A DNA stretch of 64,000 bases from Selaginella moellendorffii (taxonomy: Eukaryota; Plantae; Lycopodiophyta), in NCBI RefSeq assembly GCF_000143415.4, contig NW_003314348.1:62001-126000 (forward strand), written 5' to 3'. Below, one piece after another: positions 1 through 41,444 of this stretch. Position 1 is the first letter of the stretch, and the number at the start of each line of letters is the position of its first letter. A program made the translations under genes and the position numbers. A model generated the notes under the pieces. That model saw only the letters and a list, made by a program, of their open reading frames with translations. It did no database searches and was not told the DNA's origin.

Positions 1-157
1 TTTGGAAGTTCCTCTTGCAGATCTATTCTAAACCATTGCTCAAAGAGAATAAGCTACAAAACTATTCTTCATGCTGATACGAATTCTTGATCACAGTGGT
101 GCGGTCTGATTGATGATATACCAGAACAGTAAGTAACTCTTGATTTACTTTTAGAGC

Positions 158-12165: not shown

Positions 12166-15100
12166 ATACATAAATCTGTATATAAGCAGGGGTCTAAACC
12201 CCAATTAATATACCTATTCCCACTCACATAAACTAAATATTAAAATGTTGTGTTAAAACTAAAACTCAATTTTTATATATTTACTAATGTTTTTCTCTAA
12301 TCAAGAGATAAAAATATAAAGCAAATAAAAAGTAAATACTATATGTTGAAAATGGAAAATATAAAGTGATAAAATGTTTTTATTACTTTTGCTTTGATGA
12401 TTTAAAATACATAAAACTTTTAAAATAGGAGCAAATACATACTAAGGATAAAGAAGGCTATAGGAGGCAACTATTACAGATTAATGCTTAAGTATTAATG
12501 TGATATAAAATCTTTTTTTGAAAATGAATAAACTTATTTAAATTTTAAACATATTACTATTTCTGTTTAACTTTCTAAAAGAATTCAAAATAGATAATTT
12601 TTATTATAATTTTTATTAAACCACATTATATAACAAGAGTCTTGCCATTTTAAAGAAAAACATTAATACCAGCCTTTATGAGTGCATGGAATATGGAAAA
12701 AAATGTGCATATCAATTAGCTCAAAAACTTTAGCTTATACACAGGAGTGAGTGATCCGAATTAAAACCAATCTGATGGCTACCAAAACCCCACTACGCTA
12801 ATATTAATATATGGTATTGTAGCTATACACTTGGACCTCACATCATTCCCTCCTCTCAAAATAATAAAAAGACCATCTGGGTTCTTTTGTAGATAGGCCA
12901 GGATTTGGAGGAACATCAAGAGGATGCATTAGCAGATATATAGATGGTATTAATTATTTTTGATCCTTTTGTACAAATTGTTTCAAATGTTGCACATACA
13001 AAATTTCTAGAGGATCGACCTACTGGACATCATGTCAAACCTTATAAACTTGTGGTCCAACTTGCTGCAACATTCGATATAGTCTTTTCCACTTAGTAAA
13101 GAGTGCTTTAGATAAACCACATATCGTAAGATGGGGAAAATGGACTAACACCAAGTCATCCATTTTGTACTCTACAGATGGATGATGATGGGAGTTGTAG
13201 TGCCATTGTTGTCCCACTTTTATATGGCCTAAGTGTTCAGTAGATTCTACTTGGATAAGTGGAAAAATTCTCATCAAATACTGATCCCATAACCTAGTAT
13301 TGGCAGCTCGTGGTAATCACGAAAGTAAACCCAGCTCCATTGGTAATATTGGATCATGACCATATAAGAGTTTATATGATGAAGCACCAACAAAACTCTG
13401 CACCCCTATGACATATGCATACCAAAGAGATGGCAAATAACTATCCCAATCCGAATGCTGAAAGTTAATATACTTCGTGATTATTCCTTTGAATGTTCAA
13501 ATAAGCCGTTCCACCAAACTGTCTAACTGTGGATGATAAGCACTCGTGAAAGTGTAGTGGATCCCTAACTGAGATGTCAAAACGTGAAATGCCTCAGCAA
13601 TAAATACAAGACTATTATCCGAAAGAATCTATTCCAGACAAGAATGCTAGAACACCACTCAATTGAGGAAGAAGTATCTAATAACAGTTGCAGAGGCGCT
13701 AGCAAGACCACCAACTTCCAACCAACAAGTCAAATAGTTAGAAGCAATAATAACATATTTATTGCTAGAAATCAATCGTGGAAAAGATCCCATAAAATAA
13801 AATGCCACCAGCTCAAACAGGCGAGAAACTGCAATTGACTTTAACCATCCTTCTGCGGCACGAGGGGGAGTATTACAAGCCTGGCACCAAACGTAGCTAT
13901 GGATATACTGGATAACATCACGTCACATCTCTGGCCAATAAAAAGACCTACGCAACTTCTCAGTTACACAAGATGTCTTATATGCCCGCCTAGAATAAGA
14001 GAATCATGGTAGGCATGGAGAAATTGTAGAATAAAGACAGAAGGCACCACCAGCCATAAAGGATCATCAAGAACCGTCCCCACAAAATAAAGAAGGCTGT
14101 CTTCAAAACAATATTAAGATTGTAAATGCTAAAATGGTAAGTCATTAGCAAGTGATTGAAACCCATCTCGAAACCTTTGAATCCACAGCTCAGTCTTTTG
14201 AGCCTTGCAGACCTCATCAAAAGAAGGTAGATGTAACGCTGAATTTCAAGCCGAACTCCAAGCCTGTTGCACAACAAAACGAGGGTCCAATACAATCCTA
14301 CGAGCACCAGCTCCCCATATCCAGCACCTGCACGCAAAAATGGTGTCAGATGGGAGTCTGGCACAATTTTGGCATACTAGTGGCCTAACGTGAGGAGCAG
14401 GGTACCCTACCGACTGGAGCAGTGTGGAGCTTAGGTTTAGACTCAAGCCGGACGCAGAACAAGGAGCAACATAACCTAACAGGAGCCAAACTAATGTCTC
14501 AAGTGGTCGAACATGCATTTCAACCACTATCCCTACTATACATTTAGAACTCCCTATATCCCCCCCCCCCCTTGAGGAACACACACTTTGGGTTTTCACC
14601 CCAAGCCTCCCTTAGTACCAAGAGTTAGTCTTTGAGATAAGCTCAAAACTTACTAAATATGGAATGGCATAAGATTGCGAATTTGGACACAGGATGAACA
14701 CTATTGTGTTCAGGCCAACCTCTACATTCTATAGATATGCCAAATGAGTGAATCTAGACACTTTCCATAAATAGCATTTGGGACCAAAATGAGACCAACA
14801 CAAAGGGTATGATAGCGAGAGTGTTTGGCAAACACGATAAACTATCATCTAGCAATATTGAGGGATTAGTCTCAATACATGAGGGTTTTTGCCAAGCTAG
14901 TGCAAGATAGAGCAAAAGAAAACTAAAAAGCCAGGCCAAGTATGTTTGGCAAAATAGACACTTAAGAATTCCGTCCTTATGCTTATCCGGCCAAGTACAA
15001 ATAAGCTCTATTTCGTTAAAGTGGGATTTATTCAGTAAAATGGGACTAAGTACAAATTTTCAAGTATTTGAAAATGATGTGAATTTATATGTTTTTTGTC

Positions 15101-21644: not shown

Positions 21645-23225
21645 GTAAGCCTCATTGCATGTGGCATAGCATGTGGCCTCACGCCATTTCCATTGCAGAA
21701 ATCAACCAAATGGCAGATGGAATGGTATATCAGAAGCCATTTGATCGGACAGACACCAGTCATCATTTATGGCATATATATTGTCTAGCCAAGCACTATC
21801 CGCATCTCCATAATCTGCTCAACCGGATGGGTTCTTCGACCACTGAACATGAGCGTGGACGTATTAGAGAAGAGATGGCATTACTATTGGGTTTAAATCC
21901 TGATAGTGTGGAGAGTGATGAAATTCCAAGATTATTGTATAGGCGTTGGAGGCAAAAAATAACAGTCTGAGATGGCATGTATTTATTTAAAAATGTAACT
22001 TATTATGGCATGGGGTTCCATGCCATTGTATTAATATTAAAAGACAATTCTTTGAGAGGATTTACATTATACTAGAAGTGTTACAGCATGTTATTGGAAG
22101 TTTACGAAGTTGTTTTATTAATAAGGGGAAAGTAAAGATTGAATGGGGACTTGGGCTCCACCTAGACTCGGAGCAACTGAGCCAATATTAAAAGGATGGA
22201 AAGAAATTGAACGACGATGACAAGGAGAAGAGAGAGGTGAAGCAGTGGCAGGGAGAGAAGTGATTGAGTAGACATTTCCTTGTTTAAAATAAAATGGCAT
22301 GTGCCTCAATGCAGTTGAATTTTGTTATATTTATACACTATATAAAGGTTTGGAAACCTTATTTTACAAGTGGGATAATGACAATTCCCACTTTAACGAA
22401 ATAGAGCTTAAATGCTAAGTCTAGTTTACTAACACTTGGACAAGAGGGGCCAATAAAGGGAACCAACAGTACCGACCTCTTGCCGTCATGGTAGTAAGGA
22501 AAGAGTGTCCGTAAGGACTGGCCGACAAGTATCTTTCAATACCCGAAATTACATTCGCGACACTCTCCCCCCCCTGGAGAAAATCGATATCTTCGTTGAT
22601 GCATACCCAAGTTTAGCAAACCGTCAAGGAAACAACTCTGAAAGTTAACGGAAAGCACACTATGTGGGAAACACACCGACTTATATGAGTTATGGAACAA
22701 CCTCTCCTCTACGTCCAAAGACGTCCAGACTTAGACACCCTCCGACCGTCACCGATAAGGAAATGACTAACGGAGTTAGCCACCCTTGTTGCTCCAAGTA
22801 CCACTCAACTTATAAAGGAATGATATATCCTTGCCTGTAGAGATATGGGGAGAAGGCCAGAGGCCTAACTTCCCCTGAGCAAGAAATCAACCCTTTGGGA
22901 AGATTTAAACAACTATTATAAACAAGCAGATTAAGTTGTTTACATGATCACACCCCTTTTCAAAAATGAGTCATCGAGAGAGAGAGGCGGGGACTTGTGA
23001 TCAGTCTATAATAGTTATCCCCATGGTTATGGATTGGACCCACGCACCGAAGTGCCGAAGTCAACCTGCCAAAACTGACCCAAGTACTAATGAACGAGAG
23101 AAACAAAACTTTGATTTATAGAAATATATTACTTTATTATTTTTCAAGATTTAAGACAATATTTACAAAAACTAGTTTTCTTTTACTATTCGCATACTCC
23201 GTAATAAGCTCATGAGCATGTGTAA

Positions 23226-23479
23226 GATTGCTAAGAGGCTCTTAAGTTGATTCACAAGTTGGATAGCCTTTCCACTTAACTAGATACTCTCGACGTTTGG
23301 CATGTTCAAGCCAGCATGCGTCCAAAATAGCCTCCACTTCATATTCAAGTTCACCATCCACAACTTTTGGAAATGGATGAATCTCCCTGTGTCATGCAAC
23401 ATCCATAGTGTAAGGAGTCAATAGATTGGCATGAAATACATTATGAATATTTGACATCTTCGCAAGATCCAACCGATAG
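23226..23479 (-). pseudogene. Integrase C-terminus and chromodomain of element C
   Basis: Minus-strand translation gives IHNVFHANLL and then EYEVEAILD...EYLVKWKGYPTCEST*EPLSNL. Confidence 0.85.
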
Positions 23480-23716
23480 GATACTGTGAGACACAAAATC
23501 CCTAGGCCCCAAAGTGGAGCTGGAAAGGGTGCCACGTGGTAATGGCCGAAGCAAAAGCCAAACGAGCGTAACATGTTTGGACTAAAAGCTCCGACTTGGA
23601 AGGCTGAGAGTGGGAGTGGAACTCCCAACAAAGTGCTCAAGGAACAAGCATGAAGCGAGCAATAAGTGAGACTCCAAAAAGGGACCCAAAAGGACCAACA
23701 CCTGACACGTGGAAGT

Positions 23717-24051
23717 GTCCGAGATGGAGTCCGAGGTGGAGTCCGAGGTGGAGTCCGAGATGGAGTCCGAGATGGAGTCCGAAGTGGAGTCCGAAGTGGA
23801 GTCCGAGATGGAGTCCGAAGTGGAGTCCGAGATGGAGTCCGAAGTGGAGTCCGAGATGGAGTCCGAGAAGGACCCGAGATGGAGTCCGAGGTCGAGACCG
23901 AGACTGGGACCGAGACCGGAACCGAGACCAGGACCGAGACTGAGACCAAGACCGAGACCGGGACCGAGACCGAGACTGAGGCGAAGGCCGAGACCGAGCC
24001 CGAGCCCGAGTCCGAGTCCGAGTCTGAGTCCGAGTCTGAGTCCGAGTCTGA
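23717..24051. repeat. LTR minisatellite: 12-mers (GAGATGGAGTCC) grading into 6-mers (GAGACC/GAGTCC)
   Basis: Read directly; longer counterpart in the 3' LTR. Confidence 0.95.
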
Positions 24052-25062
24052 GAGGGTGAAAGCCCAAAGCGTTTGTCTCCCAGACCCTGGGGGGTTTGGT
24101 GAGCTCCAAAAGTATAGTAAGGGGGAGGACTGTAGTGGAGCCAGTTTGGCTAGGAAAGGCCAGTTTGGCCCAGGAAGGCCAGACCCAGTGTTGGGTGATG
24201 AACTGACCACTGGGAAGTCCAAGACTAGAGTGAATACGGATCGACAAGCGGGGTAGCTTGGTGAAGTGTTCAAGAGCCGGCTCTAGTTCCCCCGGGAGAT
24301 CGACTGGCCGATGCTCCCAGTCCAAGTGTGGGTGGCACTACCTACTTGGATACCAGGGGTGGCTCAACGGAACCTCGCTCTAAGCCCATGGCTAGAGCAC
24401 CCAAAGGCGAAAGGCGGGGAGAGTACCCAGGTGGCTCGCGTAAGGTCACAGTGTTCCGAAGTGTTGTCCCAAAGTCCCAGACTGTGGAAAGGAAAAGGAG
24501 TAGTCCTTTAGTGTGGTGGCCAAGGATACTGTCATGTGGTGAGGAAGTCCCAGAGGACCATGGGACTTAGTGGTCAAGCTTGTGGGCCTCGATCCAGTGG
24601 CAGTGTTGGCACACACGGTCAAGGGCAGAAAGGGACTTAGTGGGGACAGACAGAGGGATATTGGGGAAGGCTGCTCCCCTTGTCGGTGGGCATCCTAAGG
24701 ATGCTAAGGAGTGGATCTGGAATGACCACTCACAGATGGTTGGCTCAGTCTTGGAGAGACAAGACTGTGTTGCAAGTGGTATTGGACTACCGGTGCGGCA
24801 AAGGTGATTAGGCATGGCCTTAGCGTAACAGGCTGCTATGTCGGTGGTACCTTTGAGTGTCGGTCATGGGATCAGACACGTAGAGCACTTGGACCAGGTG
24901 CAAGGGTGGAGTGGCATGGATGCCACTCTTGGGGCTAGCAAGTCCCAAGTCCTGAATTGGACTTATGGAGGTTGTGAATGAAACTCCTCCAAGTGGTCAA
25001 AGGTGTGGTTAAGTGACTAAAGTAGAATGGAAAAATTAGTCGCTTACAACTTGGTATCAGAG

Positions 25063-28000
25063 TTGTTCCTTAGTCCGACTCTTATTGGTGGCCAAGTATA
25101 TCACCGCTTGTATTGGAATCGGAGGGTCCTAGATATGGACCTATCCTTGAGGAGTAGCATGTCGAAAAGACATGGCTCTCCACTCAAGTTCATGCATGAA
25201 CTTGCGCACGATGTGGTGGATGGAAAAAGGGCCAGTAAGGGAATGACTTTGGGATCTTGGGAACAGTATAAAGGTTTCTTCATAGAGTTGAGGATGTGAT
25301 CTAGATGAGCGTTTGACTTTGCAAACTGGCTAAAGTAGTTGTGGTAAACAACTATAGTTAGGATCATGGGAAAGATAAAGACTCCAAAACAATAAAGGAG
25401 TCACAAGATTATCCTCATATATTTGAGGTGGGTGCTCATGAATGTGAGACTAGAAGTAATGACCGTGGGAGGTCAAATACGAAAAAGGACACAAGTCCTT
25501 GAAATGGTAGCTGGAGCTACCTCTAATAAATGCTAGAATAAACCAAGGAGGTGGGGGTGTACTTAGAGGATGAGTTGGTATTCTCATCATATGGACAAGT
25601 GGTCCTAAGGGGCAAAGGTTAGCCCCAAGAAAATCATCAAGTGTCAGAGTAACACTTGCAAAGATTGTCCTTGTGAGTAGGACATGAATACAAGAAGTTG
25701 TATTCTAGTGAGTTGGCACCTCTAAGACTGAGACCTCGCAGGTTGTTGGATTAGCAAAGTCCAAAATGCTGGATGACTCAAGCGGAGTCAGGGAATGGTC
25801 CTAAAGGATTGGTTGAAGCATTTAGACTAAGGTGTATGGTGCCCCATGAGGTATGGGGAGGATCATAACATCCAAGTATGAGAACAGTAGGTATCTCATT
25901 AATGGCAGAATGTGCCATACTAAAGTTGTGGGAAAGATGTTCCCAGAAAAAAGCAACTTTGGCCCAGAGTTGGGTACAAGCACTATGGTGCGGTGCTAAC
26001 GGATAGTTAACATGAGGAATAATTATATTGGTCTTGGCAAAGACCTAAACACTAATAAGTAGTGTTATAAGGGTAGGCTCGTGGGGTTGATGGTGTGGAG
26101 ACACCAAATGTGCCAAGGTGTGATACCTTGAGGTTATGATGGTGGGTTCATAAGAACCCCTTGCCAAGGGAATCCTAACGGAAGCGGGAAAGGCATGGCC
26201 TAAGCTGGAAGGCATGCGGTTGGAGTGTGGTGACCCAGATAATGATGAAGGTGTTGAAGCACCAAGCAATGAGTTGTAGGACTTGACAGCTATGGGGCAA
26301 CTAAGCAAGAGGTGCAAGATAATTGGTTAAACTAGTAGAAGGTAGCTACCCAAGACTTCTTAATGGTATAAAAAAGTTAGATATACCCTTACGGGGGATA
26401 AATTACTTATGTTGTGATATAGTAAGTCAATGTCGTAAACGGGAATGCTCATTGTCCAGAAGCCATCATTGGGACACCCAAACACTCTAGAACACCAGGA
26501 GGTGGTGTTTTGTGTCGTAAGGGCAATGGATAAGGCCCAAGGGACTAAGTCTCTAACGAATGATGGATAGAAGGTGCTATCCAAATGTCCAATGTTGTGG
26601 AGACGAGAAGACTGTCTACCCGAATTGGACAAAGCCAAAAATGAAATTTTGGCAAGGCTAGTGATAGGCATGTAAAGGCCCATAAGCAGCAACGTTAACC
26701 CTGGTGTGGGGGATTATAAGGTGAGCATGCCCAAGATTGAGGAACCACTCCCTAGGCTATCGAGTAGGTTCATCCCTAAGCATACTTGCTAAGGCATAGT
26801 AAAATGTGCAAAACTATCCTCCTAGTTTGGAGGAGAATAACCAAAGGAAACATATGGGGCCAAAAGGCAAGTAGTATTGGGATGGAACTAAACCATAGAA
26901 ATTGAAGGGCATATCCAATGATGGTTATGGAAGTTGGGAGTGGAGAATCAAGAGGGTGCTTGAGGATATTGTTGCTAGCAACCGTGAGGCCATGGAGAGT
27001 CTAAAATATGCAATTGTCCATGTTAGACTATATGGCAACTATAAAGCTTGCGAAGAGGGAGGCCTTAGCAAGCTAAGGGACAGAATTCCTTCAAGGTTCC
27101 CAAAGATGATTCTAGGTAACTTAGTACTTAGAAAGGCCAAGTGTAAATGGTTCATGGAACGCGCGAAATCAGAGTGGTGTAGCAGAAGCGTGGTCTTGAA
27201 GCTTGCCATGAGGCAATGCTATCAAGGTTAGGGAAGTAGTTCCCGAGTGTTCAAAGAGAGGGCTTTGAATGAAAGTCGATGGTCAAGGACTTTCACGCTT
27301 ATGCAAGAACCATGTTACAGTGGTCGGAGGACTTGCCAAACGAGATTGGCAAGTCAGGGGAACAAATACCCTAGTTGAAGGTGATTACTTCAAAAAGGGT
27401 GGGCCATGGGGCCAAGCATGGACGAGTCCCTGCATGATCACGGACTTGTCAAGTGAGAGGACTTGGCAGTGTGGAGGAACTAGGTTCCTAAGCTGTGATC
27501 TGTAGCGCGCTTTAAGTATAAGTTGGTACACCGGCATGGGGAGTCACGCTAGGCATCTAGGGTGATGCCGTCCGTAGATGCATATACAAAGGTTGGGTTC
27601 GAGTCCCGACCCTCTAGTGCTTGGGTTCGAGTCCCAAATCGCTAGGGCGTGGTGATGGTTTGGAATATGAGGATACTCATATTTCGGTGGTCATGGACTC
27701 TCAATGAGGAGATTGGCTTGGGCACACCGCCAAGCGGTGGATGCCCCGGAGTCGTGATACACGGTTAGATTGCTTAGAGTGAAAGCTCGGCATATCTAAC
27801 TTGAACACTTTGGTGTAAAGGGCACTAAGGACGTGGTGAATGAGATGGGGACACCCAAGTCTCAGTTGCTATGAATCCTTGGCCGAAAGGGCTGGCTTGG
27901 GCGCACTGCCAAGTGTGGGGGGTACCCCCGGGGTCATAGTCAACAACTTAGAAGGGTCTGGAAGACCTAGTTCCTATTGATAGACTTATTAAGGGGTCAA

Positions 28001-29104
28001 GATGAGATCACTAGGTGATCTTGTGGCTAAACAAGGACAAAGTCTTTGTTTGGGTTAAGGAATATAATTCTTAGTTCAAAGTGTTGATTTGAACTATTGA
28101 TAAAGGTGTGGCTTGGTCGAAGTGACCAAGTGGGAAGAACACCTAAGGGAAATGAGTTATGTCAATGCTATGGCATAGTAAGTCCAAGGAAAGTAGTCTC
28201 TATAAGAGATCCAAGGGAGGGTCTCAAAAAATTGGGCCGTGGATAGAGCCCACGACAGAAAATGTTAAAGAGACGTACTAGGGGTGAACACCCTCTAGAC
28301 TTGGCAAAGCAAAGTGTTTGCTATGGAACCGAAAGGAAACCTCAAAAATGGAGGTAGCGATCCTATGTTGTTGGGTGCAACAATCAAGGATAGGAGCAAA
28401 AGACTAGTGGCCAAGAAAAGAGCCATGGGAATCATGGGAAGGAATCCAAATTGCAAAGTTAGCCAAGGAACACAAATGTGTTTGATACTAACGGATTGCG
28501 AAAAAGGAAGTGGACTTCCAAGGATAGATTCCCAAGTGCTCCAATTTGGCAAAGTAAAAGCTCCAAGTGAGGAGCGGCAAAGTAGCCAAAGGATAGGGCC
28601 GTGGACAGCCCTGGCATAAATGATGATAATTGAAACGTAGTGCCAAGGGTGGCACAAAATAGAAAAGAGGATGGTGGTGCCCTCAAGTAAAGAATTTCCT
28701 AGGATAAGGAAGTGGACTTGCACAATATGTGCAATGCAAGGTGTCGGAGACACCTAGGAAAATTGACTTCAAGAAGTCAAAAGTAAACGTTCCAAAGTGC
28801 AAAGGTTATATCGATGAAAATTGAGACTACTCAAGATGGAGTAGTGGGATTGAGATAGAGATGGTGTCTCTAACAAATTTAGCGAGAACTAAACCAATAA
28901 ATGGAAAGAACCACCACAAGTGGTCTAGTCAGTCTCTAAGTTGGAGAGACTATCCTCCTTAGAGGATGGACAAGGCATGGTGAGCCTTCGGGGTCAAACC
29001 ATAGACAAATATTGGCCGGGTGCCAAGGATGGGAATGGTAATACTTGTGGGTGTTACTTTATAAAAGGGTTTACTGCTCGATGAGGACATCGAACTTCGT
29101 CTAT
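25063..29104 (+). ncRNA. Putative highly structured non-coding RNA domain (dense stem-loop array)
   Basis: Dozens of adjacent short inverted repeats, e.g. 25158-25174, 25185-25204, 25485-25500, 25686-25705, 26048-26066, 27330-27355, 27662-27685, 28027-28053, 28718-28734, 28739-28755, 28763-28780, 29078-29093. Mismatches are mostly G-U compatible on the + strand. Expression not shown. Confidence 0.7.
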
Positions 29105-29346
29105 GGGTGGGAGTTGTGAGACACAAAATCCCTAGGCCCCAAAGTGGAGCTGGAAAGGGTGCCATGTGGTAATGGCCGAAGCGAAAGCCAAACGAGCATA
29201 ACACATTTGGAGTAAAAACTCCGACTTGGAAGGTCGAGAGTGGGAGTGGAACTCCCAAAAATGTGCTCAAGGAACAAGCACGAAGCGAGCAATAAGTGAG
29301 ACTCCAAAAAGGGACCCAAAAGGACCAACACATGACACGTGGAAGT

Positions 29347-29898
29347 GTCCGAGATAGACTCGAGTTGGAGTCCGAGATGGAGTCCGAAGTGGAGTTCGAG
29401 GTGGAGTCCGAGGTGGAGTCCGAGGTGGAGTCCAAGATGGACCTGAGTTGGGGTCCGAGATGGAGTCTGAGGTGGAGTCCGAGGTGGAGTCCGAGATGGA
29501 GTCCGAGATGGAGTCCAAAGTGGAGTCCAAAGTGGAGTCCGAGATGGAGTCCGAAGTGGAGTCCGAGATGGAGTCCGAGATGGAGTCCGAGACGGAGTCC
29601 GAGAGGGAGTCCGAGATGGAGTCCGAGATGGAGTCTGAGATGGACCAAGATGGAGTCCGAGATGGACCCGAGATGGAATCTAAGATGGAGTCCGAGAAGG
29701 ACCTGAGATGGAGTCCGAGGTTGAGACCGAGACCGGGACCAAGACCGGGACTGAGACCAGAACCGAGACCGGGACCGAGACTGAGACTGAGACCGAGACC
29801 GAGACCGGGACCGAGACCGAGACCGGGACCGAGACCGAGACCGAGGCGGAAGTCGAGACCGAGCCCAAGCCCGAGTCCGAGTTCGAGTCCGAGTCTGA
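29347..29898. repeat. Expanded 12-mer/6-mer minisatellite in the 3' LTR of D
   Basis: Same units as 23717-24051 but about 217 bp longer. Confidence 0.95.
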
Positions 29899-30900
29899 GA
29901 GGGTGAAAGCCCAAAGCGTTCGTCTCCCAGACCCTGGGGGGTTTGGTGAGCTCCAAAAGTATAGTAAGGGGGAGGATTGCAGTGGAGCCAATTTGGCTAG
30001 GAAAGGCCAATTTGGCCCAAGAAGGCCAGACCCAGTGTTGGGTGATGAATTGACCACTGGGAAGTCCAAGACTAGAGTGAATACGGATCGACAAGCGGGG
30101 TAGCTTGGTGAAGTGTTCAAGAGCCGGCTCTAGTTCCCCCGGGAGATCGACTGGCTGATGCTCCCAGTCCAAGTGTGGGTGGCACTACCTACTTGGATAC
30201 CAGGCGTGGCTCAACAGAACCTCGCTCCAAGCCCATGGCTAGAGCACCCAAAGGCGAAAGGCGGGGAGAGTACCCAAGTGGCTTGCGTAAGGCCACGGTG
30301 TTCCGAAGTGTTGTCCCAAAGTCCCAGACTGTGGAAAGGAAAAGGAGTAGTCCTTTAGTGTGGCGGCCAAGGATACGGTCATGTGGTGAGGAAGTCCCAG
30401 AGGACCATGGGACTTAGTGGTCAAGCTTGTGGGCCTCGATCCAATGGCAGTGTTGGCACACACAGCCAAGGGCAAAAAGGGACTTAGTGGGGACAGACAG
30501 AGGGATATTGGGGAAGGCTGCTCCCCTTGTCGGTGGGCATCCTAAGGATGCTAAGGAGTGGATCTGGAATGACCACTCACGGATGGTTGGCTCAGTCTTG
30601 GAGAGACAAGACTGTGTTGCAAGTGGTATTGGACTACCGATGCGGCAAAGGTGATTGGGCATGGCTTTAGCGTAACAGGCTGCTATGTTGGTGGTACCTT
30701 TGAGTATCGGTCATGGGATCAAACACGTAGAGCACTTGGACCAGGTGCAAGGGTGGAGTGGCATGGATGCCACTCTTGGGGCTAGCAAGTCCCAAGTTCT
30801 GAATTGGACTTATGGAGGTTGTGAATGAGACTCCTCCAAGTGGTCAAAGGTGTGGTTAAGTGACTAAAGTAGAATGGAAAAATTAGTCACTTACAGATAC

Positions 30901-33900
30901 ATCACCAAGTTTTTTCAACACTCGATAGGGTCTGACATATCTCGGCAAGAGCTTCCGAGACAAAGAACCCTTAATGTTCAAGTTTCGGGAAGATAACCAC
31001 ACCTGATCTCCCACTTGATAGGATACATCCTGACGATGCTGATCCTTATCATATCGATACCTATTCTGAGCTTTGCCCATCGCCTCAGTAGCTCGAGACT
31101 AACCTTGGCATAGCTACTCCACATAAGTCTCAACAGCCAGGACCAACACTTCAGATATTGATTTCGGTATAACAATCTATTGAGGGACTCCACAAGCATT
31201 TCCTTGCAGCATCTCCCAGGGAGAACAACTAATAGCGCTGTGAAATGTGTTGTTATAACAAATTTTTATTGTGTTTAAATGCTCAACCTAGTTGCGTTGG
31301 TCCGCCGTGACATAGTACCATAGATAATCCTCAACTTGAGCATTCACACGTTAAGTCTGCCCATCAGTCTGAGGATGATAAGTTATACTAAACTTCAACT
31401 TGGTACCGAACAACTGGAACAGAGTGCCCTAAAACTTCCCTGTAAATCTCGAATCTCTACCCGAGATCATCTTTTTAGGAAGACCACAAACCCGCATTAC
31501 TTCATGGAAAATGAGCTTTGCTGCTTATTTCGCATTCATTATTCCCACAGTTGGAATGAAGTGTGCAATCTTCAACAATTGATCCACAACCACCATCAAA
31601 GTATTATAACCCTTGGATTTCGGCAAGCAAATGATGAAATCAAGTGTCACACTTTGGAATGGCCATGCTAGTGCTAGAATGCATTGCAACTTTCCAGTTT
31701 GCTTCTCAATTCTGCACTTACATTGCTAGCATATAAGGCATGAACAAACATAGTTTGCTACATCACCTTCCATACCAGACCAGAAAAAATCCCTTTTTCA
31801 ATGAAGCCAGAGTCTTCCACTTTCCACCATATCCCGCTGCCGGAACATCATGATGTTCCCACAGAAACAACTACTGCAAATCCTTAGAGGGAAGATACAA
31901 TCTTTCTTGCTTATAGAATATAAGCCCATCCCAAACTGAGAAGTGAAGCTTCACATTGGTGTGGCTAACAACTTTCGTTGCATCGCTATCAAAGTCCTGC
32001 TTTGACAACTCCACACGGCATAACATTGCTTTCGTCAATAGATCACTTCCATATGAAGCTCAAACATCCTCCAACTAGTCCGAACTGATTGTCGATATTG
32101 CCGGAAATTGAGCCTGACGACTCAACGCATCCAGAACAATATTGTCTTTACCAGGTTTATATATGATTTCAGTATCATATCGAGCGAGCTTCTCTTACCA
32201 ATGAGCCTGCTTCGGTGTAAGCTTTGGCTGCGTAGCAAAGTATCTTAGTGTGTTATTATTTGTATAAACCTTGGTATATCCACCCAAATAGTATTCTAGT
32301 GCCAACACTATAGCAAACATCTCTTTTTCATGCGTTGGCCATTTTTGTTAAGTTTCATCCAATTTCTTGGAATAGAACACAATGGGACAACCATATCGCT
32401 TTAGCGTAACACCAATCACTTTGTCACAATCTTGCTATAACATGGCACCAATAGCATAGCTAGATGCATCACAATGCACTTTGAAGGGTTTATCAAGATC
32501 TGGGATCCTGAGAACAGGAACTGTAGTCAAGATCTCCTTCATCTGTACGAAAGTATGCTGACAAGCTAGTGTCCAATGAAATTGTACACTACTCTTTGTC
32601 AACTCAGTCAACGAAAGAGCAATTCTGTCAAAATTGCAGACAAATTTGTGATAGTATCCCGCCAAACCAAGAAAGGAACGAACATCTGATACAGTGGGCG
32701 GAACTTCCTAGGATTTCATTGCTTCCACCTTCTTTGGATTTACCTCAATTATGCCACCACCAACTATATGTCCGAGAAAGTTTACGCGCAATTGTCCAAA
32801 AGCACATTTACTTTCCTTAGCATACAGTTTATGTTCACGCAACTTCTGAAACACCAGCTCCAAGTGTTTCAAATGATCCTCCAACGTTTTGCTGAAGACT
32901 AGAACATCATCGATGTATAAGACAACAAATGTCTCTAAATAATCTTCGAGTATTCTATCCATCATAGTGCTGAACGTTGCCGGAGCATTGCATAACCCGA
33001 ACGGCATGACAAGGAACTCATAAAATCCGTACCGAGTATTAAAGGTTGTCTTCTTGACATTCTAATTTGCCACCTGTATACCCGGACCATAAATCAAGTC
33101 GCATAAAACTTAGCCTTTAAGAGTTGGTCAAACAAGTCATCAATGTGAGGCAAAGGATAACTATTTTTGACCGTGATCTTGTTGAGTGCTCGATAGCCAA
33201 TACACATCCTCATGGTTTCATCCTTTTTCATAACAAAAAGAATTGGCACTCCATATGACTTGCTTGGTCAGATATGACCTTTGTCAAGAAGCTCCGTGAG
33301 TTGCTTCTTAAGTTAAGCCATCTCCTTGATATTCAATCGATATGGAGCTTTCATAGGTGGTTTAGAACCCGGAATAACCTCAATCCGATGATCAACCTCA
33401 CAACTAGGAGGTAGCCCTAGTGGTAAATCCTTTAGGAAGATATCCTGATTCCATGCCAACAACTTTAATATCTTCTTTGGTACAGGATCAACCCCGTCGC
33501 TAATTCGAACTGAGTCACCAATACCCTCAGCTTCCATCACTTGAACCCAAAAGGTCCAACATCCCTTCTTAGCTACTTTTTGAGCGACTCTCGCAGTCAG
33601 GAACTTAGAATCCCAGTCCTTTGAGGAGTGCTTTTGCAACTGGAAGGACACTTCGGGACGTCCTTTTGATTTCAACATGATACGACTTTGTCCAGCACCA
33701 TAAATCCCTTTAATATATTTGTTGAAGAAATCCATACCAAACACCATATGAAAATCTAGTATCTTCAACACTACCAAGTCCACTCTTTTTTTCCACTTGG
33801 ATATTTTTATAGGAATATCACTCACAAACTTTCTGGCTACTTGCCCACCTTTTGCAAACCGGAAGTGCATATGCGACATTTGCTCAGCATTCAATCCTAA

Positions 33901-35350
33901 CAACTTAACTAAGTCTTCGGATATCACGCTGTGCGTAGCTCCCATGTCAATCATCACTCAAATTCGATATCCGCAGACAAAACCTACCAGATACATCAAC
34001 GAATCAGTGTTTGCATTGACTGCGAGAAAAGCTTGAGGAAAGCAACAAAAGTAACTCGCCTCTTCTTCCTCATAGTCTGCATTGACCAACTCATCAACCC
34101 CTTCAGCTTTGCCACCATCGTCTTCCCTCATGACATTAATCTGAGACCTTGTCTTATACTTGTTGGGACATTTCGAGGACCTATGTCCTGACTCTCCACA
34201 ATGGAAGCATTGGCCCACACTACCTGTTCCACTAGGAGCAGGTTTCATAGGTTGCTGCTGCTTGTACCCACCAAGAGGAGGAACAGAGGGCCTAGAACTA
34301 GAAGAAGTTGCTGGTGGTCTCCAACCACCACCACCTTTGTTAACTGTTGCTTGTGAGCCTCTCAAGTGGAACCTACCTTCCACTTTCTATTTCTGGTCAC
34401 CTTGTTTATTCCTAGAATTTTTATTATTATCCAAGTTACCAGCATACGATTGCCGATATTGTTCCATGAGCGAGTGACTAAAGGCAACTTGCTGTGCTGC
34501 CTCCTTACACTCCAGATACGTCTTTGGCTTAAACTTCAAAATCTTATTGTGAGAAAGTGAACTTAAACCCTCTAGAAAATAACTCCGAGCATCTTTGTCA
34601 CTCATATTTGCAATTATAATGCACTTTTGAGCAAACGAATTAACGTAATGCATGAGGGTCCCCTCGCTGCTTTAACCACTACAACTCCGCGTGAAGTCTC
34701 AAACCAAGATCATCCAACAAGTATTCCTTACGGATATAAGACTGCATCTTGGTCCAACTTCTAGTTTGCCCTTTTTCAGCACAGACTTGGCACCACCAAG
34801 TTTTGGCATGTTTGGTGAGAAAGGATTGCGCACACGCAACTTTCGTACAATCATCTATGTCTACCGCTATAAAATAGTTTTTAATATTGTAGACCCAGTC
34901 TTCCAAAACCTGATAGTCCTGCATACCTCTGAAATTGGGTGGTTTCAGAGGCTTGAACTTTGAAACTCGTGCAACCGAGGGTGGTTGCAGAACTTACTCA
35001 TCCTCAAAACTTGAAGAGGAGTTTGGTTGCTTAGGTTTAGCTAGTTTAGCTGCCTCAACTTCTTTCTTCCTTTTCTTGTTCTCCTTCTTCAATTTGTGAA
35101 TCTCCTTTCGCAAATTCTCGATCTCGACTTCATGAGCCATATGCTGTAGTGCCGAAGCATTTGGCTCTTCCTCTTTTGACTTAGCCTCAGCCTCTTCCCC
35201 AGCATCTCTAGCAAGAGTTTCCTCCTCTCGATTCGCCCGTCTAGAGGTTTCAACATCATCAGCACGGTTCCTTTTCACCATCCCACTAGCTGCATGCATG
35301 CCTCTATCAGTAACTGAACATGCATACAACATTTTTACCGAATGGTGCAA
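30901..35350 (-). pseudogene. Disrupted gag-pol of chromovirus C
   Basis: gag, zinc knuckle CFHCGESGHRSSKC, protease IDMGATH, RT MPFGLCNAPATF...YIDDVLVFS, RNase H VHCDAS, integrase and GPY/F region; many stops and frameshifts. Confidence 0.92.
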
Positions 35351-38300
35351 TCTAACTAATCCTACATAAGTTGTTTCGGATCTACTAGAAAAGTCTCTAC
35401 GTATGTAACTTCAGTTAGAAAATTCGACAAAAGTTGGATAGGAATCGCTGAGACAATTCCTCTGATACCAAATATAGCGCACTTGAATTTGGAGCTGAAC
35501 TCTAAGCCCATTGCACTACAAAACGAGGGTCTAGTACAATCCCACGAGCACTAGCTCCCCATATCCAGCACCTGCATGCAAGATGATGTTAGACGGAGTC
35601 TGGCACAATTTTGGCATACTGGTGGCCTAACGCAAGGAGGAGGGTACCCTATCGACTAGAGTAGCGTGAAGCTTGGGCTTAAACCCAAGCCAGACACAAA
35701 ATAAAGAGCGACACAGCCTAGTGAAAGCCAAACTAATGTCTCAAGTGGTCGAATATGCATTCTAACCATTATCCCTACTATACATTTAGAATTCTCCATA
35801 TCCCCCCCCCCCCCCCTTGAGGAACACACGCTTTGGGCTTTCACCCCAAGCCTCCCTCAGTATCAAGAGTTAGTCTCTAGGACAAGCTCGAAACTTACTA
35901 AATATGGAATGGCACAAGATTATGAATTTGGACACGAAATGAACACCATTGTGTTTAGGCCAACCTCTACATTCTATAGATATGCTAAATGAGCAAATCT
36001 AAACACTTTCCATAAATAGCATTTGGGACCAAAATGAGACCAACATAAAGGGTATGATAGCGAGGGTGTTTGGCAAACACGGTAAGCTATCATCCAGCGA
36101 AATTAAGGGACTAGTCTCAATACGTGAGGGTTTTTGCCAAGCTAGTGCAAAACAGAGCAAAAGAAAACTAAAAAGCCAGGCCAAGTATGCTTGGCAAAGT
36201 AGACACTTAGGAATTCCTTCTTCATGCTCATCCGGCCAAGTACAAATGCTAAGTCCAGTTTACTAACACTTGGATAAGAGGGGCCAATAAAGGGGACCAG
36301 CAATACCAACCTCCTGCCGTCATGGCAGTAAAGAAAGAGTGTCCGTACGGACTGGCCGACAAATATCTTTTGATACCCAAAGTCACATTTGCAATAGTAG
36401 ATCTTACTCTACACCTTGTGGATACTGAATGTCAAGTACAACAACTGCTAATGACATAGAATCCTCATTGAGAAAATCCACAAATGCTGGAACAACAAAC
36501 TTATCAAATTTTTCACTTTCATAAGAAGAGAGTGAAAAAGAAAAAACAGCTTAAAAAAGGGCATCAGTATCAGCCATAGAACTCCTCGAATGATGAACAA
36601 CATCAAAATTATATATCTGAAGCTTCAAAGCCCACTAAGTAGTATGACAAACCAAATTCTTCCGCTTTAATAATGAAATAATAGCAATATAATCACCTTC
36701 TAGTAACGTCTGAGAACCATGTAGATATGCATGAAGTTTCTCAAAACCCCAAACTGTTGTTAAACACTCCTCTATTGTGGAGTAGTTCATTTCTGCTAAT
36801 TGTAATGTACGGCTTATATACACAATGGGATGGCACTAATCAGACACACTCGAGTTCTCTTGCATTAACACACCTCCAAAACCAATGTTAAAAGCATCCA
36901 CGCGCAAAATAAAAGGTCAAGTGTAGTTAGGATATGCCAAAATCGGAGGAGTCATCAATAACTCTTTGACATCCCCGAACGCCCACTCATAATCCGGAGA
37001 CCAAATGAAAGATGATGTTAATGACTTCAGCAACGCTTGCAATAGTGCAGTGTGATCAAAAAGATGATCCACAAAACGACTAAGATACTGCATCTTGCCC
37101 AAGAAGCGTTGCACATCATTCACACACTTCGGAGTAGGGAACTTTAGAATAGCCACAAGTTTGTCAAGATAAACTTGCAAACCCTCATGAGAAATACAGT
37201 ACCCAAGATAAGTTGTATCCTTGGACCCAAACATGCACTTTGACTGCTTCAGCTTTAAACCAATGTTGCATAGCCAATCCAACACTTTACAAACATCACG
37301 AACCTGCTCCTCCCATGTCCCCTCCGAGTGAATTAAGACATCATCAATGAAGTCAGCAGTCACCTTTGGCATATCGCAAAGAACCTCATCCATCATCCAC
37401 TGGAAAGTGGGTGAACCAACGATTTCGCCCCAAACGATCCAAGAGATCAGCAGTGTGAGGAAGAGGGTACACATCTTGGATCGTCACTTCGTTTAACGGA
37501 TGATAGTCGATGTAGAAACGAATACTCCAATCAAGCTTCGTCACAAGATTAGGTTCACATGCCTAAGGACTCCACAACTTCTGAATAACACCCTTCTCCA
37601 ATATCTCCTTGACATTTACATGTAAAATTTTGATCTCCTTGGGTGACCGACAACAAACGGGAACCTTGATTGGACAAGCATCCCCGGTTGGAATTGGATG
37701 ACATGTGGCAATCTTGACCTCAGACGATAGGTCAAATTCAAAAAGATCAAAATACTCCTTCATAAGCCAGTCCACTGCTACAACACAAAGATCGTCGAAG
37801 GGATCGAAAAAGGGAAGAGCAGAACAAGATAGAAACATAGGAGGAAATAGTGGGGGAACAAAAGTAATGAAAGCAGAGGTAGAAAGAGAGGGACAAAGAG
37901 GTACAGAAGTGAGAGGAATGGATGAAATATAAGGAAGTATGAGACAAAGGGGAGAAGCCTGAAAGTCACACTTGGCATGATTGTGTTGCAACCAATCCAT
38001 ACCAAAAATGAGGTCAAAAGCTTAATTCGGCACCACCCGTAACGACTGCAACTCAAGCTCGAGATCGCCCACACGCACAACCAGGTCCTCCTCATCCCAT
38101 GCACATGCATGTGTACGGCCGTTGCCATAAAGAATGAAAACTAGTTCTGCCGCATGATGCAAGTGTAGACGACAATGTGTGGCAACAGGATGAGCAATAG
38201 AAGATAAACTCGAACTTGTATCAACCAACACGGAGAGAATAATAAGAGACCTCTTGTTATAAAAACAAGATTGGAAAGTAAACACTGGATGAACTGGTGC

Positions 38301-40131
38301 CGAGTGAACCCCTTGATGATACCCCCGAAAGAAAAATGGAAGGGTCACTGACTTATTCGCGCAAGGTCCCTCAGTTTACTTACGCGACTCCTTGTTTCCC
38401 AGATCCATCTTGGTGTCCAAACCTTCCACTACAGCAACACTAATGGGACGTTGTTAACGCCAAGGTCTCCACCTAGGAAATGGAGGTCGCCAATCCAGAA
38501 AACGCCGACAATGCCGATAAGTATGACCAACTTCATCACATGCCCAGCAATGAACATCACGGCCACAACCACGTGCTCGCCCTTGTCCTTGGACTCGAGC
38601 AGCAGCAACATCAACCTCCATTGGAACAGAACCATCACTCATAGGAAGTGGAGTTGAAAAATTGTGTAGCGAGAAGTGGAAGAAGCGACTTCTCATAACG
38701 TTGTGCTAAGCAAAGAGCATCATCAAGGGTGGCGGGAGCAAGTGCATGCACAAGTCTGACAAGATCTTAACGAAGTGCTAGCCACAACATTCCTAGCTTG
38801 ATCCACTTCAACATATTGGGCTCCACATGAAGCAAAAGACTTCAGAAACAAATGCCAAATTGCATCACTGACTCAGATAGCTCTTGGCGAAGGACGATGT
38901 AATTGTTGGAAGGCATCATCACAATCATCGACATGGCCGAAGGCGCATTTGAAGATGTCCGGGAGAAGACTTCAATCCTCACGAGTGGCTGTGCTCAAAC
39001 CATTGTACAATTGCAATGCCATCCTTTGGAGACAAGTGGCAAATTCACGCAAATATCAAGCATCATCCCATGAATTATATGTGGCAATCACCGTGAAGTG
39101 ATCGAACCAATGATACACATCATCCCCAAGATTCCCGCGAAAGAACTCCGGCCGAATGCAAAGATTGGCACCAAGAGGAGGAGGAGTTGTACCACGTGCC
39201 GTGAACGCCGCCATCAATTGAGTTTGGTTGTTTAATTGCAAACGCATAGCATCAAGCAATTGGACCAACTACTGCTTTAGAGTCAAAGGAGGAGATTTCG
39301 GATCTGCTATAAAGATGAACGAAAAAGAAAAAACAAAAGAAGAGAAATGACAAAAAGCTATAAGGAAATGGTAGATCTAGACAATGCAAAAAGCTAGATC
39401 TAAACCAATATCCTGAAAAAGAAGAACAAAAGAAAGGAAATGGAAAAAGCTAGATATAGACGATGCAAAAGCTAGATCTAAACCAAAATCCCAAATTCAA
39501 GCACTCCTCAGGGACAATCAAGGGTGCCCCTCACCTCCACCAATGTAAATGTTTGGAATATAGAAAAGGAATATAGAAAATATGCATATTAATTAGCCCA
39601 AAAACCCTAATTTATATACAAAAGCGAGTGGTCCAGATTGAAACCAATCTGACGGCTACCAAAATCCCACTATGCTAATATTAATATACGGCATCGTAAC
39701 TGTACACTTGGCCCTCACATTATATATTTATATGAGTTTTAACCATTTTATTTGTTAACTATTAACTATGAACTTAAATGAATTTAGATACTTTTTTAGT
39801 TCTTCTAAGTAAAATAGCGATACTTACTTTAGCAACAACAAAATGTACGTCTATGCACTTTTGAAACTCACACTTGAATGAAGATGTAAGTACTTTTTAA
39901 CTAAGCAGTATCAATCCCCAACAAATTTAACTGTCAAGCTAGCTAAACTAAATTTTATTAAATTTTCTAGTGGTTTGTTTTGCATTGCTTCGAAATACGG
40001 TTTCAAACGCTGCGTGAATGAAGCGGAGAGAAAGAAAAGGAAGGCTATCACCCTGCCTAAAACCTTGATAGATCCGTGGTACTGCTCCAGCTAGGGGAAT
40101 ATTCTACTCCCAGGTTTTAGGGTTTTAGGGA

Positions 40132-41444
40132 ATGGCGGAGAAGAAGAACAAGGGGGGCATGGCGCTGCGCGTCCGGCCTCCGGCATTTGGACTTCCCACG
40201 GCATGCCCGAAATGTTTGCCATCTCTTCTCTACTTGCGCCTTGCCAACATCACATTCTGGCCCGAGTATAGCGCCGCCATGCCTGATTCCGGTAAGGCGA
40301 GAATCCATCACGTTATATCTTGGTGTTTTTCTCTTTTATTTTGCGTGGCAGACGATCTTCCCATGGTGGAGCTGGGACTGCTGGTTGGATTCGCGAGCGA
40401 GCCGGGAGGAGTGGAGGAGTTCTTGCGGACGGAGAAGCTGGGCGATCTGGACGCGGATCTGGCGGAGGTGGACAGGTCGGAGCTCAAAGCATTCAAGTCT
40501 TTGCTGGTGCCGCTCAGTGACGCGCTACAGCTGGAGCTCTGGTCCAGGGAGAATGAGAGCATCGCACACAAGATTTACGTCTCGCATCTTCCATGGCCGA
40601 TCAACAGGGCGATCGAGTGGAACATGAGGCGAAAGTTGATGAACAGGCTCGGAGTGAACAAAGAGAATGCCAAGGACAGAGAAGCCGAGGTGAGCTTTTA
40701 TCCCATGGGGGAGAGAGATTGGAACAAAAAGTGGTTTGACGTCTCCTTGGTTGTGGTTTTAGATCTACAAGTGTGCCTTCGATGCGTACGAGGCCTTCTC
40801 GGCTAAAAAGCAAATGGACTCGCTCTATCTTGTGAGCGACAAGTAAGTACCGTATTCACTGCTGAGATTGACTCCTTTCTTTTTTTCATTTTTGTGCTTT
40901 TAAGGCCAACGAGTCTCGATGCGATGCTACTCGCACACATCTTATTCGTTCTATCTGTGCCTCTGGTATGCTGGCCACTTTCAATTTTCTCGTTATTCTT
41001 ATGATGTTGTGTTGATCCTGCCATGACAGGTAGGATCTATTCTCAAGGATGAGCTGGTCTCGAAGCATCCATTGCTGGTCCAGTATGCCGAGTCCATGAA
41101 GGATACTCTCCTCAAGAGCAACGAACCATCGCCATCGGACAGTGTAAAGTCGCCACCGACATCACCCCGAGCATCAAGTCACGCTAGTTCATCGTCCAGA
41201 GACAAAGATAAAGGTTTGTTTTTTCAAGGCGATTTGATTCGATTGATTTGCTGGTTTGTTTTCTCTTTTTCCAGGAACAAACCCTGAGCCCAAGCGCAAG
41301 CAAACTCCCAAAGAGAAAGAGTTCCGGAAAAGGGGAAAGATGTTCGTTATGGCTCAGTTAGCAGCTCTCGTGGCCTACATCGTATACTCGGGCCTTCCAT
41401 TCGAAGAAGACGACGGTGACGACAATGGGCATGACGACGATTGA
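40132..41444 (+). CDS. MTX1: Metaxin (mitochondrial outer membrane import protein), multi-exon
   Basis: N-terminus RPPAFGLPTACPKCLPSLLYLRLA typical of plant metaxin; LPWPINR, PTSLDAMLLAH, then a C-terminal TM helix and acidic tail; telo-box-like motif just upstream. Confidence 0.88.

Follow-up and report, generated by a model that had tools for sequence, protein, structure and literature searches.

A LARD-type LTR retroelement packed with short perfect hairpins, possibly made as templated inverted copies

LARDs (large retrotransposon derivatives), LTR elements that retain kilobases of non-coding interior, are common. An earlier note on a stretch of 64,000 nucleotides from Selaginella moellendorffii (here called the window) described a retroelement in it, element D, as an LTR element that integrated by the normal retrotransposon route, codes for nothing recognisable and consists of a continuous chain of stem-loops. 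The anatomy of the element bears out the first of these statements (Table 1): LTRs, primer-binding site, purine tract and GATAC duplication are all present, and the duplication, at 5 bp, lies inside the 4-6 bp range of LTR retrotransposons. By the known plant consensus, the primer site TGGTATCAGAG corresponds to the 3' end of initiator tRNA-Met. The 3' LTR exceeds the 5' LTR in length because its tandem array is longer, and the non-tandem parts of the two LTRs are 96.9% identical (K2P 0.032; 29 transitions and 2 transversions). The whole element is inserted within a gypsy element (element C) that has the opposite strand orientation.

Table 1. Features of element D. Positions are those of the window.
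Feature	Position	Strand	Remarks
Complete LTR retroelement (element D)	23485-30895	+	7.4 kb
Left target-site duplication, GATAC	23480-23484	+	identical 5 bases at 30896-30900
5' LTR, 1564 bp, TG..CA ends	23485-25048	+	aligns with 29115-30895
12-mer tandem array in 5' LTR, unit GTCCGAGATGGA, grading into 6-mer	23717-24046	+	Tandem Repeats Finder
Hairpin-rich non-tandem part of 5' LTR	24060-25048	+	11 perfect hairpins against 2.8±1.4 in shuffles
Non-coding interior, 4066 nt	25049-29114	+	
Primer-binding site TGGTATCAGAG, plant initiator tRNA-Met type	25052-25062	+	3 nt past 5' LTR
Perfect 20-nt palindrome in leader	25185-25204	+	135 nt past primer site
Two tandem tRNA T-arm/B-box-like hairpins, GGTTCGAGTCC twice	27593-27652	+	28-nt tandem repeat
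Short polypurine tract GGGTGGGAG	29105-29113	+	adjoins 3' LTR
3' LTR, 1781 bp, TG..CA ends	29115-30895	+	aligns with 5' LTR
Tandem array of 3' LTR	29347-29893	+	
Hairpin-rich part of 3' LTR	29900-30895	+	
Right target-site duplication, GATAC	30896-30900	+	matches left copy

The searches for coding content agreed with the reading that the interior holds no relic of gag or pol. Each of its sense frames contains 80-87 stops, tblastn of the interior against the gypsy open frames of the window gave no match, and Pfam returned nothing at E≤1 for the ten longest stop-free pieces. For three open frames of element D, a word-indexed protein search yielded either no relatives or low-complexity matches only, and an exhaustive search of representative proteins yielded three low-complexity matches of about 30% identity. 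A 20-mer across the LTR end and the primer site occurred in three metagenome contigs, which shared those 20 bases alone, and had no match in viral contigs. A large interior without gag, pol and env (4066 nt) and a uniform, abundant family both place the element with the LARDs: in one DNA run, 107,690 of 2,800,581 contigs (3.8%) matched the element stretch at a likeness of at least 80%. The family is very abundant and barely transcribed, with 26 matching RNA reads among 18.4 million records. With LARDs such as Sukkula of barley it shares long LTRs, a kilobase-scale interior without gag or pol, high copy number and presumed helper dependence. It differs in its host, a lycophyte and not a grass, and in the dense perfect hairpins of 6-10 bp and unrelated sequence in its interior and LTRs. 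LARD interiors are said in PMC7215508, which cites Kalendar et al. 2004, to have conserved RNA structure. Retrozymes and Cassandra/TRIM are likewise non-autonomous, protein-less LTR elements with the same type of primer site. However, an Rfam search over 23000-31500 gave no match at E≤1 beyond chance-level ones, neither the hammerhead ribozyme of retrozyme LTRs nor a 5S rRNA-like LTR being present, and element D is therefore neither a retrozyme nor a 5S-bearing element; at 7.4 kb it is also far from miniature size (<1.5 kb). We conclude that element D is a single insertion, already ageing, from a LARD-type family of non-coding, presumably helper-dependent LTR elements that is very abundant.

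The LTRs and the interior of this element are packed with short, local, perfect Watson-Crick hairpins of unrelated sequence. In the interior we counted 55 perfect hairpins (stem of at least 6 bp, loop of at most 10 nt) against 8.1±3.3 in dinucleotide shuffles (z 14). Stems of at least 7 bp numbered 22 (1.9 in shuffles), and with stems of at least 5 bp the count rose to 95. The count is about seven times that expected by chance and exceeds the rest of the window three- to fourfold; each of the other 4-kb tiles held 6-25 hairpins at a z no greater than about 3. The excess persisted against shuffles that preserve 2- to 6-mers (about 10 hairpins) and against shuffles of 8- or 12-nt blocks. The non-tandem LTR parts had 11 perfect hairpins against about 2.5 in shuffles, and nine of the 11 in the 5' LTR are common to the 3' LTR. 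No comparable excess was seen in the LTRs of the host gypsy element or in the neighbouring DNA; hence the hairpins are not general to the retroelements of this genome. Every hairpin that the earlier note had listed was found at or adjoining its place, and its statement that the stems differ and form no tandem repeat stands, as the stems of the interior are mutually unrelated in sequence and no internal repeat underlying them was found. The description as a continuous chain has to be softened: the hairpins are dense, but the share of the interior that they cover is 22% for stems of at least 6 bp and 36% for stems of at least 5 bp, and their spacing is irregular (CV 0.86). Pairing was enriched only where the spacer measured 0-10 nt, loops of 4-5 nt being the most frequent. 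Beyond a spacing of 20 nt, stems in the interior showed no enrichment, which speaks against the multibranch nesting that had been proposed for some of them.

The stems are perfectly Watson-Crick paired, end sharply and have the composition of the background. The first pair outside 100 hairpin cores was G-T in 22 cases, A-C in 12 and another in 66, where composition predicts 17.8, 13.7 and 68.4, and the second pair was Watson-Crick at the background rate. Interruptions across 59 stems (4 G-U, 2 A-C and 4 other) were no more than decay after insertion would give at the 3.2% seen between the LTRs. G-U was no more frequent than composition predicts, and the claim that imperfect pairs are mostly G-U on the sense strand was not upheld. 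A sense-strand excess of long stems containing G-U (14 against 4.0 expected; antisense, 3 against 2.5) was rejected as evidence because extensions of this kind grow from perfect cores, which the shuffles do not have; with the cores given, G-U lay at its compositional expectation. Stem arms (GC 0.46) and linkers (0.45) were alike, and the purine skew of the arms equalled that of linker k-mers, as would be expected of a stretch of ordinary sequence paired with a copy of its complement. The sense strand of the interior is purine-rich as a whole (A 31%, G 28%, T 24%, C 17%). The sole strand-specific signal was the composition of the loops, which are C-poor (7% against 17% expected, p 7e-6) and G-rich (38% against 29%, p 0.003) on the sense strand; C is also scarce in the bases next to the stems. 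C-G closing pairs were somewhat favoured (31% against 18%). The hairpins share no loop motif, GG is not enriched in the loops, and none of 10 tetraloops was of the GNRA or UNCG type.

Local folding was far beyond both the shuffles and the neighbouring gypsy interior. In 100-nt windows of the interior the mean folding z was -1.44 on the + strand and -2.01 on the - strand, compared with roughly -0.3 in the rest of the window (2-kb bins, +0.56 to -1.5), and over 14 segments a fold tool returned z values that averaged about -2. Fragments of 350 nt folded with an energy gain over shuffles of 20.3% on the sense strand (z -4.0) and 30.2% on the antisense strand (z -4.7), the corresponding gains of the host gypsy element being 6.6% and 10.6%. 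The earlier note had proposed selection on the sense RNA and had held that a lack of strand asymmetry would speak against it; for folding energy this was the outcome, the antisense gain being at least as large as the sense gain.

Comparison with other copies bears on whether the hairpins belong to this locus or to its family. At 40 sites nearly all other copies differ from element D. The common letter adds pairs at seven of these sites, where random changes of the same kind give 1.7±1.3 (maximum 5), and removes pairs at three (6.6 expected). Since the common letters restore hairpins above chance, the element D copy is losing them, and the aligned letters point to the hairpins as a property of the family and not of the locus. 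One LTR stem is G-C paired in this subfamily and G-U paired on the sense strand in most copies.

How, then, did the hairpins come about? That they arose during retrotransposition through templated inverted copying has, in our estimate, about an even chance of being correct. In cycles of retrotransposition the growing DNA end would fold back, copy 6-10 nt of its own strand and rejoin the template; an exact reverse complement would then lie within a few bases of the copied stretch. Such short-range template switching would most likely be the work of the helper's reverse transcriptase. An element without a reading frame would lose no function from the insertion of hairpins, so that insertions would pile up, and hairpins already present could be made perfect again in the same way. 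Once integrated, they would no longer be maintained, and the element D copy would lose them through ordinary transitions. For DNA replication, template switching is on record as a source of new hairpins and as a means of restoring old ones to perfection (PMC8794818), and we infer that it does so in reverse transcription as well. The hairpins that arise in this way (PMC8794818, PMC10710096) resemble those of element D in their perfect inverted arms, short spacers and background composition. The events described in DNA replication are sporadic (PMC8794818, PMC10710096), whereas element D needs about 100 of them in 4 kb of one family, probably in reverse transcription. Creation or re-perfecting in one step would explain the dearth of G-U pairs and mismatches in the stems. 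The abrupt stem ends, the composition of the arms and the spacers of 0-10 nt also argue for copying, as do the folding beyond shuffles on both strands (more so on the antisense), the lack of GNRA and UNCG among the 10 tetraloops, the family-wide presence suggested by the common letters and the neighbouring DNA devoid of an excess. Copying slips in reverse transcription thus fit the evidence at least as well as selection on RNA shape does, and they account for most features more simply. Against them stand the extreme density of the hairpins, about seven times chance, for which we know of no precedent from errors of reverse transcription, and the C-poor loops and flanks, for which they account only on the condition that C was scarce in the background sequence beforehand. 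The LTRs of the host gypsy element, which have no comparable excess, and the G-C/G-U variation of one LTR stem also count against them. Hairpins of this origin might benefit the transposing lineage, for example in packaging or as a shield against silencing. If copying slips are at work, a mutational process makes hairpins wholesale wherever coding constraint is absent, possibly providing raw material for new small-RNA genes.

The strongest alternative, selection of the hairpin chain at the level of the sense RNA, is one that we regard as quite possible, if on balance improbable. It comes in two versions. The RNA might be ordered on the scale of its genome, as the RNAs of some persistent viruses are, or it might carry numerous scattered stem-loops whose loops are purine-rich and whose linkers consist of purines. 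These would either capture the Gag or nucleocapsid of a helper and out-compete the helper RNA in packaging or hide the RNA from small-RNA silencing with stems not long enough for Dicer. In favour of selection, the 20% sense energy gain lies within or above the range of structured RNA viruses, for which gains of 7-9% (HCV), 15% (SARS-CoV-2) and about 24% at most are given, and whose genomes have been characterised as stem-loops following one another by the hundred (PMC7642675). Element D resembles such GORS RNAs in its energy gain along the whole RNA (20%) and in its many consecutive local stem-loops. GORS, however, is defined on coding viral genomes and as a sense-strand property, whereas element D is non-coding, its energy departs from shuffles along the RNA with a larger gain on the antisense strand, and its stems are perfect inverted repeats visible without any energy model. 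Unpaired positions of the sense strand are purine-rich and C-poor, which would keep linkers from pairing with one another, in agreement with the absence of long-range pairing. Purines in single-stranded loops bind Gag in a retrovirus (PMC8096270), and dispersed degenerate stem-loops are proposed packaging signals of small RNA viruses (PMC6475782); element D resembles both in its many short stem-loops with purine-rich loops along its whole length, although no loop motif common to them was found. The favoured C-G closing pairs, the extension of the excess over the whole transcribed unit including the LTR parts, the G-C/G-U variation of one stem between subfamilies and the structure ascribed to LARDs in PMC7215508 also fit selection on RNA. 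On the other side, the sense strand has no advantage in z-score or energy gain, and there is no excess of G-U, though G-U should cost an RNA stem little and most mutations are transitions. The stems are not enriched in GC, stable tetraloop types are absent, neither a common loop motif nor an enrichment of GG was found, the spacing is irregular, and RNA reads are few. We think it rather unlikely that selection has acted on the whole RNA to keep it a series of some 100 short hairpins, each independent of the others, whose unpaired parts consist of purines only. Such an RNA would be the equivalent, among retrotransposons, of the genome-scale structure found in persistent viruses; it would allow a parasite without proteins to capture the Gag of its helper or to evade small-RNA silencing, and thereby to occupy a few percent of a plant genome. 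Either way, in a family to which a few percent of the assembled contigs belong, the interior consists almost wholly of local hairpins. If these are selected, they would show plainly that a cellular parasite can have RNA structure on the scale of its genome, and they would offer a direct handle on how helper proteins choose their RNA. Selection and copying predict opposite outcomes in an alignment of natural copies.

It is far less probable that the inverted repeats originate or play a role in the DNA once it is integrated, whether as cruciforms or hairpins with a chromosomal role, as sites for dimeric proteins or through template switching in replication at the insertion site. The signal is indeed strand-symmetric and purely Watson-Crick, but each stem has another sequence and offers no common binding site, the loop mode is 4-5 nt and not 0, the common letters of the family indicate that hairpins were lost in place and not gained, and flanking DNA replicated by the same forks is without an excess. 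Scarcely credible is the view that element D is an ordinary degenerate gag-pol element or that composition or low complexity has inflated its hairpin count: AT-rich parts of the window outside the element do reach 10-13 hairpins per kb, but GC here is normal (43-49%), the excess survives the k-mer-preserving and block shuffles, and the stops, tblastn against the gypsy open frames of the window and Pfam on the ten longest stop-free pieces all tell against a degenerate gag-pol.

Some smaller observations concern the helper and the leader. Past the primer site, no homology was found between the leaders of elements C and D, the alignment score of 50 comparing with 36.6±6.3 (maximum 57) in shuffles; by the tRNA-iMet primer site common to both, element C would be a candidate mobiliser. 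At the T-arm-like motif, ARAGORN found no tRNA gene. The primer-binding site is predicted by folding to be paired in a stem with 25080-25097, and the palindrome of the leader, judged by its letters, is a candidate site of RNA dimerisation.

Element D is a complete LTR retroelement nested in a gypsy element of the opposite strand (element C), with which it has only the primer site in common. It is flanked on both sides by the five bases GATAC, its initiator tRNA-Met (iMet) type primer-binding site, TGGTATCAGAG, is located three bases past the 5' LTR, and a short purine tract adjoins the 3' LTR. The LTRs are unequal in length because the copy number of a 12-mer array differs between them; on either strand the arrays produce open frames that are long but spurious. 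With the arrays excluded, the LTRs are 96.9% identical (K2P 0.032; 29 transitions and 2 transversions), and element D is therefore not a young insertion. A 20-mer composed of the LTR end (CTTACA) and the iMet primer site is shared by three JGI metagenome contigs, which contain nothing else of element D and presumably represent LTR elements of other plants.

Features of the window discussed in the text
Feature	Position	Strand	Remarks
Element D	23485-30895	+	complete
5' LTR of element D	23485-25048	+	aligns with 3' LTR; TG start, CA end
3' LTR of element D	29115-30895	+	aligns with 5' LTR; TG start, CA end
12-mer tandem array, 5' LTR	23717-24046		grades into 6-mer; about 28 units
12-mer tandem array, 3' LTR	29347-29893		grades into 6-mer; about 33 units
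Interior of element D	25049-29114	+	4066 nt
Palindrome	25185-25204		20 nt, perfect
T-arm/B-box-like hairpin	27593-27652		two tandem copies
Host gypsy element C	22410-23484 + 30896-36392	-
Element C primer site	35470-35460	-	iMet
Element C LTR remnants	36244-36392 and 22410-22558
Element C protease domain	33316-33957
PPR gene	55303-57792	+	829 aa
PPR gene	45662-47485	-	607 aa
Gypsy family fragments	1815-5957, 12932-14859, 35595-39404		79-91% alike
Direct repeats	60642-61083 and 62771-63211		roughly 440 bp; 91-93% alike, 2.1 kb apart
Open frame	40132-40806	+	GST_N_4/Tom37 (metaxin-like) domains

The earlier note had described the interior as non-coding, and this was confirmed. Its longest open frame does not exceed 152 codons, each sense frame contains 80-87 stops, tblastn of stop-free pieces of the window's gypsy elements and genes gave no meaningful match to it, and its ten longest stop-free pieces had no Pfam match at E<=1. 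As far as these tests reached, a degenerate gag-pol is excluded. An Rfam search of element D found nothing, so the element has neither a hammerhead nor a 5S sequence. Its identity as a non-autonomous LTR retrotransposon of the LARD type (large, non-coding, helper-dependent) is secure. We found no paper on this family, nor on a LARD with a hairpin chain of such kind. The interior also holds a perfect palindrome with a self-complementary centre, 135 nt 3' of the primer site, at which the RNA of the element may dimerise, and a hairpin resembling a tRNA T-arm/B-box (GGTTCGAGTCC), at which ARAGORN found no tRNA gene.

All hairpins listed as examples in the earlier note are present in the sequence. 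Perfect stems with loops of up to 10 nt were counted and compared with dinucleotide shuffles. The interior contains 55 stems of at least 6 bp, against 8.1±3.3 in shuffles (z 14), and 22 of at least 7 bp, against 1.9. At the 6-bp threshold the non-tandem parts of the LTRs contain 11 each (about 2.5 in shuffles), and the remaining 4-kb tiles of the window 6-25 (z at most about 3). The raw density of element D is otherwise approached only in some AT-rich kilobases. K-mer content does not account for the excess, because shuffles preserving 2- to 6-mers and shuffles of 8- or 12-nt blocks all gave about 10 hairpins, and within the reach of these tests an artefact of composition is excluded. No internal repeat was found in the interior; every stem is different. 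Hairpins of at least 5 bp (95 versus 27 expected) cover 36% of the interior and those of at least 6 bp 22%, so the proposed "continuous chain" of stem-loops is dense, but "continuous" overstates this copy.

Folding energies likewise exceed those of shuffles and of neighbouring DNA. The mean z of 100-nt windows is -1.44 on the + and -2.01 on the - strand of the interior, versus roughly -0.3 in the rest of the window. Fragments of 350 nt gained 20.3% over shuffles (z -4.0) on the + and 30.2% (z -4.7) on the - strand, compared to 6.6% and 10.6% in the host gypsy interior, where the latter is the sense strand, which also folds somewhat better than its shuffles. Fourteen sense segments of element D, each folded with 200 shuffles, had z values averaging about -2 (range +0.5 to -4.7) and predicted structures that are rows of local hairpins. 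Of the results that the earlier note said would refute its reading, z-scores no better than those of shuffles or neighbours were thus not seen, and a lack of strand asymmetry was seen in the energies.

The possible readings of how the hairpins arose are ranked here by probability. Reverse transcriptases are known to prime themselves by folding back. The reading placed first, with about an even chance, is that templated inverted copies were made during retrotransposition: short-range template switching would make and re-perfect the hairpins, as is documented for DNA replication (PMC8794818), and such events would not be purged from an element that codes for nothing. This ranking follows from that precedent, from the expected lack of purging and from the traits of the hairpins themselves, namely perfect Watson-Crick, sharp-ended arms of background composition, short spacers, no signature of G-U tolerance, and strand symmetry. 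Stems of at least 7 bp number 21 versus 1.8 expected with spacers of 0-10 nt and 4 versus 1.5 with 11-20 nt, and there is no excess beyond 20 nt; nested or multibranch pairing, as suggested earlier, is therefore not supported statistically. Loops are most often 4-5 nt long; from centre to centre, the hairpins are irregularly spaced, at a mean of 73 nt (CV 0.86). Among 100 perfect cores examined, stems end abruptly: the first outside pair is G-T in 22, A-C in 12 and other in 66, versus 17.8, 13.7 and 68.4 expected from composition, and the second is Watson-Crick at background rate. The claimed bias of imperfect pairs towards G-U was hence not borne out. Interruptions in 59 scored stems (4 G-U, one of them a change private to this copy, 2 A-C and 4 other) are few, about as decay since insertion predicts, so essentially all stems were perfect at insertion. 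The GC content is 0.46 in arms versus 0.45 in linkers, and the arms have the same purine skew as linker k-mers, as if an ordinary purine-rich arm had been joined to its complement.

Selection on the sense RNA, the main rival, is possible though less probable. With its energy gain, element D stands at the upper end of what has been reported for structured RNA viruses, which likewise consist of hundreds of stem-loops in succession (PMC7642675), and purine-only unpaired parts would hold the hairpins local. The sole strand-specific signal is loop composition: sense-strand loops are C-poor (7%, versus 17% in shuffled-sequence hairpins, p 7e-6) and G-rich (38% versus 29%, p 0.003). C is scarce in the stem-flanking bases too, and there is some preference for closing stems with C-G pairs. 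In a retrovirus, purine loops serve as sites for Gag (PMC8096270). However, selection finds neither a sense-strand advantage nor a G-U excess, the stems are not enriched in GC, and the loops share no motif; GNRA or UNCG tetraloops were found in 0/10. Copying and selection can also be combined, with hairpins made by the former and kept by the latter.

The family is abundant in a DNA run of the same organism, in which 107,690 of 2.8 million contigs (3.8% of records) matched 24100-29300 with at least 80% likeness; 2,699 came from a run whose label names a second organism. Two RNA-seq runs of 9.2 million records each had only 10 and 16 reads on this stretch. In nearly all of these the - strand carries the first mate, which under the usual stranded protocol means sense RNA; the actual protocol is not on record. 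Per base, changes among copies are almost equally frequent on the two strands (G>A 0.094, C>T 0.099, A>G 0.109, T>C 0.082). We then compared, site by site and without a consensus sequence, 40 sites at which this copy departs from nearly all others. The common letter makes or lengthens a hairpin at 7 of them (random changes of the same kind, 1.7±1.3, maximum 5 in 200 trials) and removes pairs at 3 (6.6±2.3 expected). Seven sites at which this copy so differs lie in the LTR. Three changed after insertion, since the other LTR keeps the common letter, and four, being common to both LTRs, mark a subfamily; at one of these a sense-strand G-U of most copies is G-C here. With 55 hairpins and an LTR divergence of 3.2%, this copy fits a loss of hairpins since its insertion, and the hairpins belong to the transposing lineage, not to the chromosomal site. 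A role or origin in chromosomal DNA is unlikely, because no sequence is common to the stems, the hairpins are absent from neighbouring DNA and this copy is losing them.

Elsewhere in the window, scattered fragments of one gypsy family indicate nested and rearranged insertions, and a pair of direct repeats may be a small LTR element. The metaxin-like open frame probably belongs to a host gene, as one of its exons. Both PPR genes are intact, carry E and/or DYW deaminase domains, and are of the organellar RNA-editing type, which is greatly expanded in Selaginella.
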